The notes beneath the pieces were generated by a model. It was not told the origin of the DNA. It ran no database searches and was given only the letters and a program-made list of their open reading frames with translations. Shown here piece after piece: positions 50,694 to 56,600 of a DNA stretch of 64,000 nt (position 1 is its first letter; every line of letters begins with the position of its first letter). The translations under genes were made by a program, and so were the position numbers. This DNA comes from Adineta vaga. Taxonomy: Eukaryota; Animalia; Rotifera. The stretch covers positions 14,012,001 through 14,076,000 of the forward strand of contig CP075494.1 in assembly GCA_021613535.1 (NCBI GenBank). Reading direction: 5' to 3'.

Positions 50694-53600
50694 ATGGCTG
50701 AAGCTAATCTCAATTATCAAACAATCAAAACAACGCATGCAGCACGTGAAGCTGTACGATTTAATATATTTCGAGATGTGTTTGTCAACGAATGAACTTT
50801 TTTTTTGTTTTATTTAGGATGATCAAAGAAATGAAAATCGAAAGAAAAATTTAATTATTCTCATTCTTCATTGGCTTGCTGATGAAGGGTAAATCTATTT
50901 AGAAATCTTTTTTCCAAAAAAGAAAAAGAAATTTTTTTTCAATTTTTAGTTATATAGAATCAGCTCGACAATTAGAACATGAAACAAATCTTGATGTTAA
51001 TAAATATGATGTCTGTGATAATGTTGATCTTAGTACAATTCTTCAAGAATATGAGTTCGTTCAAAGATTAGAGGAAAAAAATATTATTGAACATCGTTTT
51101 GTTTTATAGATCTTACTTTCATGTCAAATTTAATCGATATCCAAAATTAACGAAGAAAAATGGACCATCCAGTAAATAAATCTATTTCTTATAGACGTAT
51201 CTGTATCTTTTTTATTCCTAATCTTCTTTAGCTGCAGCATTTATGAGTAAAATATCAGCTAAAATGTCCAGGTAAGTTCTTTATTTGATCATCAATACAC
51301 ACATCACACTATTTCTAGTGCTCCAACATTAAATCGTCGTCCACATGTTCCACCATTACCTCGTGTTCCTAGTAATGGCATGGAAAATTCTGCTCTTCCA
51401 TCTAATCGTGTCACATCAGCAGGTGATGCACTTCGTCGTACTGCAAGTAATGTTAAAATGAATCAGTTCAATTCAGAAAGACTAATTGCACAATCTTCAT
51501 CACTCATAGGTATACAACGACAAACGTCGAATGTAAGTATTTCTTTCAAAAAAAATACATCGAACCAATTAAACATTATCATTACTAGCAACAATCAGGA
51601 CCTAGTACTATTAGCAATTATTCAGCCAATTCATTCGAAGATATGAATCTATCCTTTATGAAAGTCTCATCTGTTAAATCAGTCCCAACATCCAATGAAC
51701 AACAACAACAACAACAACAACAGAATGGACAAAAGAAAAAAGTCAGTATTGACATACATCAACATATCTCATTTACATTTCTTTTATTTCAAACAGTGTC
51801 AAAACTGTGAGAATTAAATGGAAACTACCTATGTTTCTTTCCTCTTTTAAAAATTTTAAGAAATTAGAAATGAATGCCTACTTATTTCCTTCATATAGTT
51901 TAATAATAGTTCCATTTCTTTTCTCAAGGACACTTTTCTTTTCATAATCAAGATGTAAGATAAAATTATTAAAAAGAAACGTTTTTATACTTGAGAAACT
52001 TGTTATGATATCAACCAAGTCTTTACATAATTGAAAATTTTAATTACATAAATGACTATTCTTTTGTTTTCTAGACTGCGAATACAATGAATGATGGTCG
52101 TCCCGGTTTGAATCTAGCAGACAATGTTGATCCAAGTGTAAATATCACTAGATATAAATCCTAATCATCTATTGTCATCTTGTCTTAGGATCGTCTATTA
52201 AAACCAATAGGTGGTTATGCAGGTTACACATCTGAATGGCGTGAATTAGCTGAAGTAATCAGTCGGGTAAATAATTGAAAAAAAAAGAAAAAAACTAGAC
52301 ATAGTTAATATTTAATTACTCGTTTTTTTATAAAAACTTTCTTTTTCATCTTTGTCTCATATTACATCACATTTCTCTCGTACTCATCATTTTCTGTCCA
52401 ATGAAGTAGTGTAATTACAAGTACGAAACAAAGAAAAATAATCATAAGAAAACAAAAAAGAAGAGAAGAAAAAACGGCGAAGTTTTTTATACATACATAT
52501 CGCGTACACGAAATCTAAGAAAAAAGAAAAAGAAAACACCACTGCGTAAGAAAGAAAAAAAAATCAGAAGAGATTGCGCAAAAAGAAAACCAAAAAATAT
52601 ATAGATAGATCCCGCTTTTTTTCTCTCTCTCTCTCTTTTGTTTCGTTCTCATCCTCATTCTTCAAAAACTCTTAGAGACAACATAAAGGAAAAAGAAGAA
52701 AAATAACAACAAAAAACAAAAATAATAATCATAATCATCCAATATTTCTTTTCTTAGGTTCTTGTTTTACTATACAGAAGTCTGCGCTTTTCTTTTCTCT
52801 TTTGTTACATTTCGGCTTTAATCCGATCCGATGTCGAGATTGTCGAAGGAAGTATATTAACATTTGGTGTAACAAAATCACCTTCATGAGCACTACCCGA
52901 TGGGGAATGTGATGATGGTGGGACAACTGCTGCTGTCGGTTGAAGTAATTGGGAATGATGAAGATGCTGATGATGTTGTTGTTGTTGCTGTTGTACCTGT
53001 TGTTGTTGTTGTAATGATATATCGGTAGTTGAAGATGATAGTGTAACTGTTGCTGGTCGTAAAACTGGTAACATTTTAAATAATGCTTCGTATGGTGAAC
53101 GTTTTAATTCATTGTTAATATTCGAATTTAATGTTAATTGAACAAATTTCAATCCATATGACCAACGTGGATTGTTATTGACAAACATCCATGCAGCAAT
53201 CATCGATCGTATTTGTTCATTACGTTGTTTAGCTGTTTCACGCCATTGCGGTGAATCATCTTGATATAGACGAATACCTTTAAATACACAAATGAAAGAG
53301 AAAAAAAACAAATTCATGAAGATTTATCAAGAGAATTCATTTTTATTTACCAGGCCATACAGCTTCGAGTGTTTGTTGTATGGAGGAATTTTCTATGTGA
53401 AGATCAGCACTGGATTGTAAAACAAGTGGTGGACCAAATATACAGAAGATATCCATTAATGTTGTACCTAATTCAATAGGTGATTTACTTTTTAATGGAC
53501 GTAATTGGGTAAATTTTGTTAAATAATCTTGATATACAAGAACAAAACCATGATCACCATCATGAGCATTTTGTAAATCAATTAGATCATATTCACATAA

Positions 53601-56600
53601 ACGATTCATTACATGTGAATTAGCTAAAAGAAAGTATAAGATTTACATATATATATACATATCAAAATTTCAAATGATTCTTTTTACCTCCATCAAAAAT
53701 ATTCTCCACCGGTTGTTGTTGATGTAGACTAGGATTTGTATTACTTTGCAAAATAATAGGTGATGATTGTGGAATAATATGATGTTGTTCGTGTTTGATA
53801 ATATTTGTTTGTTGATGTAATGCTGGAATATCATGAATAATATTAGTTAAACTTGTATCCATTAGATCATTTGTATCATTATGTAAACTAGTTATTCCAT
53901 TTTCATTATTTGTATCTGTATTAATGCGTTTACGTCTTTTACAACAATAATCACACATTTTCAAATATGTTTGAATGACTTCACGTGGAATATTGGCATA
54001 TTGCTTCGATAAAATCGGCCATAAACGATCTCGACCACCATGATTCATTTTCTTATGTGTATAATCAATAATATCATACATTTCTTCAATGGATACAAAA
54101 AATCTTATATCTTTATCATCATTATCTGTTCGTGCAGCAACAAGTCGTTGTTTTCCTTGAACATCAACGATATCGAAACGTTTTATACGACGATAATCTT
54201 TTGCTGTTCGATCACCTGGTTCTTTTTCTTTCGCTTGAATTGATTCACTTAAGATTTGTTCCAAACGATCTTGAGAATATACACTACGACGTGTAGCTAT
54301 TGTTTTAACAAATGTATCACGTTTACTTGTCATGATTTAACTAGAATACATACAGAATGAAAGAATGAAATACGTAGATATATAGGGAAAATGATTCGAT
54401 TGTTTTATTTCTTTTCTTTAGATTTATTTCACTAAGTCATTGACTATGTGTTTTCTGAAGGGGTTTTTTTTCAACAAACAAATTTGTTCGACATATGTTT
54501 CGAAAGGAATGATGAAAATCTTTGATAACTAACGCATGCTGCTTGCTTACTTCTTTTCTTTCTGTTTTCTTTTTTTCTGATGATTTTGCGGTTGTTATTA
54601 TTGTTGTTGTTGTTGTCGTATAATATACAAGAACGTAAACTAATGGGCAAACATGCCGCGTCGAGTTGGTTGGTTGGGATATGTGCGCTTTCGACGGACG
54701 AGAAAAGAAGAGGAGAACAGAATGAATGAATGAATATATGTTACCCTCAAAATGGATGTCTATTTTTTTTCTCTCTTTTTCTCCTTTTCTCTTATTTTTT
54801 TTTCTTCTATATGAGTAAGTTTGCATCCAACGAACAGCGTATTTGTCAGTTCTTTCTTTTTCCTTTTTTTTTCTTTCTCTTCCTCCTCTTCTTCTTCTTC
54901 TTCACCTGCTACACTTGAAGAAGAATGACGTGTATATATATATATATATATATGTAGAGAAAGAAGAAAATCAAGAGACATTTTTATATTTTTTTGTTAG
55001 TTGTTCACACCTACAGGCAAACATTTTTTTATATGAAATGCAATGAAGGATGACGTTAATATTCGATTTATTATTTATCAAGATAAAAAGCAAAAAAATA
55101 GAAGAATTATTACATCTAATTAGACTAGTTTCTATTGGGTTTTGAGCATGTTTTGTGTTTCATTATTCACAACTCAGGAGGATGTAATTAGAGAAACAAA
55201 AAAGTAGAAGTGTGTGTGCGAAAGGAAAAAAGTTTTCTCGAGAGAAATACCAAGAAATTAACACAATGTTCTGCTAAGAATCTATAAGAAGCTAGACGAC
55301 GAATGAAAATTGATTGTCGATTAATCATAGGAAAAAGCAAATAAATTGCAAATTTTGATAATTTGAATTCTTTCAAAAGAATAATAATATAGAAATGTAA
55401 ATAATTCTATTAAATTTATGAAAAAAAAAATGAAAAAGAAAAAAACAACAAGTCTTTATTTCTTTCTTTCAAGGATATCTACCTTCATGATCCGAGTGTA
55501 CGATGGGATTCTATAATTGGACTTGATGCAGCTAAACGTACGATAAAAGAAGCAGTTGTTTATCCAATAAGAGTATGAATATAATGATTAAATTCTAACA
55601 TTTATCTCGATAATTTTCATTAGTATCCACAATTATTTACCGGCATTTTGTCGCCATGGAAAGCCTTACTTTTATACGGTCCACCTGGAACAGGAAAAAC
55701 ATTATTAGCTAAAGCCGTAGCAACGGAATGTAAAACAACTTTTTTCAATATCTCAGCATCTACAATTGTTAGTAAATGGCGCGGTGATTCCGAGAAACTT
55801 GTACGTGTTTTATTTGAATTAGCACGTTTTCATGCACCATCGACAATCTTTTTGGATGAACTTGATTCAATTATGAGTCAACGTGGTAGTGGTGGAAATG
55901 CGGGATCGTAGGTATTTTAGTTCTTTTTATGCAAAACATACCTTTTTTTTCTTCTATAGAGAACATGAAGGTAGCCGAAGAATGAAAACAGAATTACTTG
56001 TTCAACTAGATGGATTAGCAAAAACCAATGATTTAGTCTTTCTTCTTGCTGCATCTAATTTACCTTGGTATTATATCTTATCAGTAACTATATAAGAAAA
56101 CTTCTTCTTGTTTTCTTTTCCAGGGAACTCGATCATGCCATGTTGAGACGTTTAGAAAAACGTGTTTTAGTCGATTTACCATCAAAAGAAGCTCGACAAG
56201 CTATGTTCCAACAATTGCTACCACCAACTGTTATTCATGAAAATAATGGTCTGATTCTATATTCTGATCTTGATTATGCACGATTAGGCAAAGTATGTTA
56301 ATTACATCTTCATCAATGAAACCATATTTTGTATTGTTTTCTTTCTCAAATATATTAGTTAACTGAAGGTTATTCAGGTGCAGATATTAAACTTGTATGT
56401 AAAGAAGCAGCAATGAATCCATTGAGAAAAGTATTCGATATACTTGAAACACTTGATGATGGTAAGATATCGATTAATTCTTTTGTTTTGGTTAAATTAA
56501 CTTAAAAAATTGAATATATTCACTTTATATTCTAGGGGCAGAACTAAGCTCATGTATTAATCTTGATTCAATAACAACAGCTGACGTTGAAAAAGTTTTA

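Follow-up and report, generated by a model that had tools for sequence, protein, structure and literature searches.

A spliced gene in an intron of a katanin-like gene

The 64,000-nucleotide (nt) stretch of contig CP075494.1 of the rotifer Adineta vaga analysed here (positions 14,012,001 to 14,076,000, hereafter the window) carries a minus-strand gene within an intron of a katanin-like gene on the plus strand. The nested gene encodes a relative of Ginger2/KRBA2-type integrases, a group that includes cut-and-paste transposases and mammalian host genes. Its reading frame opens with an ATG at position 54333, closes with a stop codon at 52807-52805 and specifies a product of 463 amino acids without internal stops. 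Three coding exons are joined by two GT..AG introns, both in phase 1. A preliminary description of this DNA had reported an intact open reading frame (ORF) of about 463 amino acids with two short introns and Q/H-rich stretches, and the exact coordinates confirm it; the Q/H-rich stretches are located in exons 1 and 3.

Coding exon 1 (53688..54333) encodes an N-terminal extension, an HHCC zinc-binding motif (53944..54057) formed by H93, H98, C127 and C130 in the arrangement H-x4-H...C-x2-C, a KRRKR basic cluster, and a disordered Q/H/N-rich linker that contains IIKHE. It is separated by coding intron 1 (53624..53687, 64 nt) from coding exon 2 (53351..53623), which holds the first half of the integrase core according to the alignment and to profile-profile comparison. 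Coding intron 2 (53278..53350, 73 nt) leads to coding exon 3 (52805..53277), which supplies the remaining half of the core and continues into a disordered tail rich in Q and H and a conserved C-terminal motif including IKAEM.

To examine transcription, 5,996 nt of the window (50680-56675) were compared with the contigs of four public runs, namely the RNA-type runs X1, X5 and X6, which stem from three studies, and the DNA run X15. The splice joint of coding intron 1 (53623>53688) was present in contigs of X1 and X5, and that of coding intron 2 (53274>53348) in contigs of X1, X5 and X6. Neither joint was found in the DNA run, where the introns are retained. From these comparisons, we conclude that the nested gene is transcribed and correctly spliced. 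The flanks of the reading frame, described earlier as resembling untranslated regions (UTRs), are indeed part of the transcript. On the 5' side, a 210-nt intron (54341..54550) with CT..AC ends, which read GT..AG on the minus strand, is removed at the joint 54340>54551 in X1. The X1 contig extends 119 nt past this joint and defines a 5' UTR exon at 54551..54669, its upstream limit being the reach of the RNA contig. The 3' UTR of about 500 nt (52296..52804) has an approximate end, given by the starts of the RNA contigs at 52322 (X1) and 52296 (X5), and is in part conserved in a second copy of the gene on contig C2.

The host gene is made up of LisH-like N-terminal exons at 50694-51176 and katanin-like AAA exons at 55474-56669, both on the plus strand. 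The N-terminal exons gave weak LisH leads (0.87) in a language-model look-up, and the AAA part was recognized by Pfam (PF00004, E 4e-27). When an AAA exon was compared with the PDB, the top ranks were taken by two-domain AAA proteins of the Cdc48/VCP type, and the best single-domain matches were katanin p60 proteins. The host gene is likely KATNAL2; the LisH leads are weak and the two halves are joined by one contig. In that contig, from X6, the joint 52265>55473 skips a GT..AG intron of 3207 nt (52266..55472, plus strand), and the nested transcript, as seen in the RNA contigs, therefore lies antisense inside the host intron. The same gene order is found in Rotaria socialis, where N-terminal exons are followed by the nested gene on the other strand and then by AAA exons; the annotation of this species divides the host into two genes. 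The nesting, which had been proposed from the letters of the window, thus rests on both the X6 joint and the order of genes in R. socialis.

Integrase ancestry and loss of the canonical triad

Pfam searches of the single exons gave Integrase_H2C2 (PF17921) on exon 1 with E 0.0015, which is below the family cut-off, and the family was therefore established by profile and fold comparison. Residues 1-145, encoded by exon 1, retrieved with phmmer two near-identical bdelloid proteins and then hundreds of KRBA2-like proteins at 30-45% identity, mammalian KRBA2 included. A profile built from bdelloid sequences only was aligned by hhalign to a profile of Ginger2/KRBA2-like transposases with a probability of 100% and E 4.9e-58 over 296 columns, which span the N-terminal extension, the HHCC motif and the whole core. 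Against the PDB, the same bdelloid profile matched the integrase core of prototype foamy virus (PFV) with E 0.004.

Structural comparison was based on the AlphaFold model of the Adineta ricciae orthologue (P0156), which is 94, 98 and 93% identical to the three exons of the window. The predicted local distance difference test score (pLDDT) of this model exceeds 90 over residues 1-139 and 222-385, and residues 140-212 and 417-470 are disordered. The HHCC region is modelled as a helical bundle, likewise with pLDDT above 90. Foldseek returned integrase chains of the PFV intasome as the top matches in the PDB (E 3e-12), and isolated integrase cores were matched with target-normalised template modelling scores of 0.69-0.79 and root mean square deviations of 2.5-3.5 Å. 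The HHCC residues are invariant or nearly so in an alignment of 58 family members. KRBA2 and SCAND3 have been placed within the Ginger2 transposases (Llorens et al. 2012, PMC3575427), and the source family is therefore Ginger2. The protein of the nested gene thus derives from a Ginger2/KRBA2-type integrase, as had been proposed at the outset. Pfam found no KRAB or SCAN domain in its exons.

The catalytic residues have not been kept as a set. The first Asp, in EYDLID (53594..53577, exon 2), is present in the window gene and in all orthologues of the family alignment. The transposase motif LQSDNGREF reads LQSSADLHI in the bdelloid gene (QSSADLHI, 53417..53394, exon 2) and LQSNVDLQI in Didymodactylos, so that the second Asp is replaced by Ser or Asn. 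Likewise, GSVERAN of the transposases corresponds to ETAK(Q/L/I)RN in the bdelloid gene (RETAKQRN, 53242..53219, exon 3) and to DTTKLRN in Didymodactylos, with Lys in place of Glu. Both replacements occur in the window copy, in the C2 copy and in every orthologue. The canonical D,D,E triad is thus incomplete in the bdelloid gene, and the pattern noticed in one sequence, with HHCC and the first Asp kept and the second Asp and the Glu lost, extends to all bdelloid orthologues when these are aligned with KRBA2-like and Ginger2 relatives. The C-terminal CxC zinc finger of the Znf_SCAND3 type, carried by the transposase relatives and by the copies resident in the genome, is also missing, and the bdelloid protein has a disordered tail rich in Q and H at this point. 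The same genome contains transposon-like relatives (L012, L015 and L003) that retain LQSDNGREF, GLVERGN and the C-terminal CxC finger.

At another locus (L010, C5:3235342-3238542), broken pieces of a Ginger2-like integrase with a CxC finger adjoin an ORF of 241 amino acids. By eye, this ORF resembles a dimerisation region of the hAT type, and its combination with the integrase pieces recalls SCAND3.

Conservation, copy number and neighbouring genes

Orthologues were searched with full-length P0002 as the query and then with a profile of eleven orthologues. All named full-length matches came from Rotaria sordida, R. magnacalcarata, R. socialis, Adineta ricciae and Didymodactylos carnosus, the last being 62% identical to the query; the unnamed ones come from environmental assemblies. 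Bit scores were at least 423 for orthologues and then dropped to at most 216 for KRBA2- and SCAND3-like transposase proteins of insects and other animals. No orthologue from outside the bdelloids was present among the named matches of these searches. A tree of 54 family members united the bdelloid genes in one clade with a support of 100, a stem of 1.43 changes per site and very short crown branches. Mammalian KRBA2 and SCAND3 formed their own clade, also with a support of 100, apart from the bdelloid one; deeper relations were not resolved. The long stem and short crown fit a scenario in which the integrase was captured once, separately from the mammalian events, and was tightly constrained from then on, which is in line with the independent rotifer domestication suggested in the preliminary description. 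Orthology with mammalian KRBA2 was rejected because of the separation of the two clades.

A protein from a butterfly (P0025), in which the second Asp is likewise missing and the C-terminal end is a similar IK-x-E peptide, was rejected as an orthologue because it is placed elsewhere in the tree. Two seed-beetle proteins from Callosobruchus and Acanthoscelides (P0003 and P0004, 1417 and 1848 amino acids) each contain four tandem matches to the N-terminal/HHCC region, for which either the fusion of gene models or a tandem array of integrase N-termini may account. Coding intron 2 is present in Adineta and Rotaria; the Didymodactylos orthologue lacks it, its exons being contiguous (L021, 8605-8609). 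Either Didymodactylos has lost this intron or it was acquired after domestication.

The genome assembly (100.8 Mb, six contigs) contains two copies of the nested gene at the DNA level, that of the window on C5 and one on C2, and all remaining DNA matches are short CAA/CAG repeats. The C2 copy has an intact frame, three exons of lengths identical to those on C5 and collinear flanks. A tree of exon 1 did not separate the order of the C5/C2 duplication and the split of Adineta from Rotaria. Searches of the flanks of the nested gene for terminal inverted repeats, long terminal repeats or target duplications returned only low-complexity A/T- and CT-rich pseudo-repeats, so that the reported lack of transposon ends stands.

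Selection statistics were calculated per exon and then summed. Between the C5 and C2 copies, dS (synonymous substitutions per site) is 0.53, dN (nonsynonymous substitutions per site) is 0.047 and dN/dS is 0.089 (bootstrap 0.056-0.13), with values of 0.042 for the folded parts and 0.17 for the low-complexity parts. Nearly all residues of the folded parts are invariant among the orthologues. The C5/C2 duplicate pair of the host gene has a dS of 0.88 and a dN/dS of 0.18, and the nested gene is therefore more constrained than the gene that surrounds it. Comparison with R. socialis gave a dN/dS of 0.11, and comparison with D. carnosus a dN/dS of 0.22 at a dS near saturation. A low copy number and a dN/dS well below 1, both expected of a domesticated gene in the preliminary description, were accordingly found. 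As a separate observation, the nested gene shows less synonymous divergence between its C5 and C2 copies than the host gene does, which could reflect synonymous-site constraint, past gene conversion or the noise of a simple method.

The position of the gene is conserved as well. The orthologue of R. socialis lies at the same intron, in the same arrangement, and host N-terminal exons together with TCP1 flank the nested gene in the window, in R. socialis and in D. carnosus, where the gene adjoins both. The C2 copy is flanked by host-gene exons on both sides, without a TCP1 match.

Several observations concern the neighbouring genes. Within the C2 region (C2:3351651-3354974), which is collinear in other respects, no DNA matches the TCP1/CCT chaperonin gene (47900-50300, minus strand), and the duplicate of this gene seems to have been lost or replaced there. 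On the other side, between the katanin-like gene and a kinase gene, three ORF pieces at 57267-58623 (plus strand) resemble an NADH:flavin oxidoreductase of the Old Yellow Enzyme type, the first piece matching PF00724 with E 3.9e-14. This gene is absent from the corresponding interval of R. socialis, where the kinase gene directly follows the AAA gene. An intronless ORF of 149 amino acids at 45250-45699 (plus strand) matches the bacterial RapZ C-terminal domain (PF22740, E 3e-22), and its horizontal acquisition is possible.

Predicted function and comparison with known systems

That the nested gene has been domesticated is well supported by its integrase ancestry, the incomplete triad, the low copy number, the antisense location at a fixed syntenic site, purifying selection and spliced transcripts. 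Its role can be approached through its motifs. The KRRKR cluster after the zinc motif, the IKHE sequence and the C-terminal IK-x-E are invariant across orthologues, the last two being psi-K-x-E motifs. The integrase core was predicted to form a homodimer with a score of 0.82, compared with 0.13 for the best control. Of 30 proteins solved as pairs of one chain, 21 reached this mark, as did none of 23 solved as single chains. The runs agreed in at least 90% of the contacts, and the partner had a pLDDT of 84. Judged by its motifs, by what is known of the family and by the predicted dimer, the protein is probably a nuclear, multimeric DNA- or chromatin-binding factor. Nuclear location, DNA binding and modification of the SUMO type are properties that we infer from the motifs and the family.

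We therefore favour the interpretation that the nested gene is a host gene derived from a Ginger2/KRBA2-type transposase, which was captured before the living bdelloids diverged, has been kept under strong purifying selection and would encode a nuclear, dimeric or multimeric protein with affinity for DNA or chromatin. We assign this interpretation a probability of roughly 0.7. After the capture, the gene kept the N-terminal extension, the zinc domain with its HHCC motif and an RNase H-like fold in the core, and it lost two of the three catalytic carboxylates, the C-terminal domain of the transposon with its CxC finger and the transposon ends. Gains include at least one intron, the KRRKR cluster, the two disordered Q/H-rich regions with their invariant psi-K-x-E motifs and the conserved C-terminal peptide. 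The bdelloid protein would no longer cut or join DNA. Instead, a dimer or multimer would bind DNA or chromatin in the nucleus through the zinc domain and the inactive core, and the disordered regions may recruit or regulate partners.

Several points weigh against this interpretation or parts of it. The host joint comes from a single contig with a depth of 2. In D. carnosus, no AAA exons were found on the 7.6 kb upstream of the gene, where the contig ends. Pfam gave no match to the split integrase core in the exons, and by its own cut-offs the domains go uncalled. The dimer prediction may echo the memory of solved integrase core dimers. Finally, acidic residues are conserved close to both lost carboxylates, an Asp (D293) two positions past the missing Asp and an E or D (position 324) three positions ahead of the missing Glu, so that a remodelled catalytic site is possible.

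Among the alternatives, a transposon repressor comes first. Having retained the zinc domain and the interface for core dimers, the inactive integrase would co-assemble with active Ginger2 transposases, or occupy the ends of their elements, and thereby poison the transposition complex. Such a role would suit a protein whose core is predicted to dimerise, whose gene has, judging by the databases, a bdelloid-only distribution, and whose genome also harbours Ginger2-like copies with intact catalytic motifs. However, the core shares just 35-49% identity with these resident copies and the N-terminal part 20-40%, the bdelloid gene sits on a long separate branch, and the C-terminal domain of the transposases is missing. 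We consider a repressor role unlikely. A broader form of the idea is that a dimerising, inactive Ginger2 integrase with two old copies serves as a dedicated transposon brake in the anciently asexual, transposon-poor bdelloids, its invariant psi-K-x-E motifs being SUMO-dependent switches for repression. Such a brake could act via poisoned Ginger2 transposition complexes or via silencing marks on element DNA; we regard it as a speculation with a low chance of being correct.

The acidic residues mentioned above give rise to a second alternative, namely that the protein is a remodelled enzyme in which the first Asp, the Asp two positions past the lost one and an acidic residue (Glu or Asp) situated a helical turn ahead of the lost Glu catalyse phosphoryl transfer on DNA or RNA. 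D232 and D293 (numbering of the A. ricciae protein) are invariant in the orthologues and position 324 is always acidic, either E or D; in the model, residue 293 lies just past strand 4 and residue 324 on the helix of the canonical Glu position. Yet the near-total invariance of the folded parts makes the conservation of three residues non-specific, and the conserved acidic residues are therefore weak evidence for a remodelled site. Moreover, the canonical Glu position is Lys in all orthologues, and DDE enzymes are not known to work with a shifted triad. We consider catalysis by such a site very improbable. That the gene is a decaying transposon remnant with a fortuitous open frame, to which the sub-threshold Pfam scores and the lost catalytic residues might point, is rejected as next to impossible on the basis of a dN/dS of 0.09-0.11, intact orthologues in three genera at the syntenic site, the intactness of both old duplicates and the spliced transcripts.

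The domestication of integrases and transposases is well documented in vertebrates, with GIN1, KRBA2 and SCAND3 as examples, and the rotifer gene adds a further case to this known class of events. Our literature search found papers on Ginger and on KRBA2/SCAND3, and none on a domesticated integrase in rotifers. The case presented here is unusually clean, given a nested locus that is fixed in two genera or more, matching neighbours in one further genus, the retention of both old duplicates and a dN/dS below that of the host gene. With active relatives in the same genome, inactive and live forms can be compared directly. The gene is thus a tractable candidate for studying how an old asexual lineage reuses parts of transposons and, possibly, how transposons are restrained.

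Mammalian KRBA2 is likewise a host gene that goes back to a Ginger2 transposase (PMC3575427), and the two proteins align over the full length of the N-terminal extension, the HHCC motif and the core with about 30% identity. KRBA2 has a KRAB box and keeps the Asp at the second catalytic position, whereas the rotifer gene has neither. Mammalian SCAND3/ZBED9, also derived from a Ginger2 integrase, is a presumed nuclear regulator (PMC3575427). It adds SCAN and hAT-derived parts and keeps the Znf_SCAND3 finger, all of which are lacking in the rotifer gene. The Ginger2/Tdd cut-and-paste transposons, of which copies reside in the A. vaga genome, are the source family and share the layout of N-terminal extension, HHCC motif and core. 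Elements of the Ginger2 type are bounded by terminal inverted repeats of about 50-180 bp and generate 4-bp target duplications (PMC2836005). In contrast to these transposons, which have inverted repeats, 4-bp duplications, an intact DDE triad and the CxC finger, the rotifer gene has none of these features. Vertebrate GIN1 and Gin-2 resemble it in being host genes, present in single copy, that were exapted from a transposase of the integrase type (PMC2836005), but they originated from Ginger1 rather than Ginger2, in another lineage and in another event. Yeast Fob1p is a host DNA-binding protein of the Ginger2 branch of integrase-like proteins (PMC3575427). It is a fungal and distant relative. 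Fob1p acts at the replication fork barrier of the ribosomal DNA and, by analogy, is the clearest precedent for an integrase fold in site-specific DNA binding.

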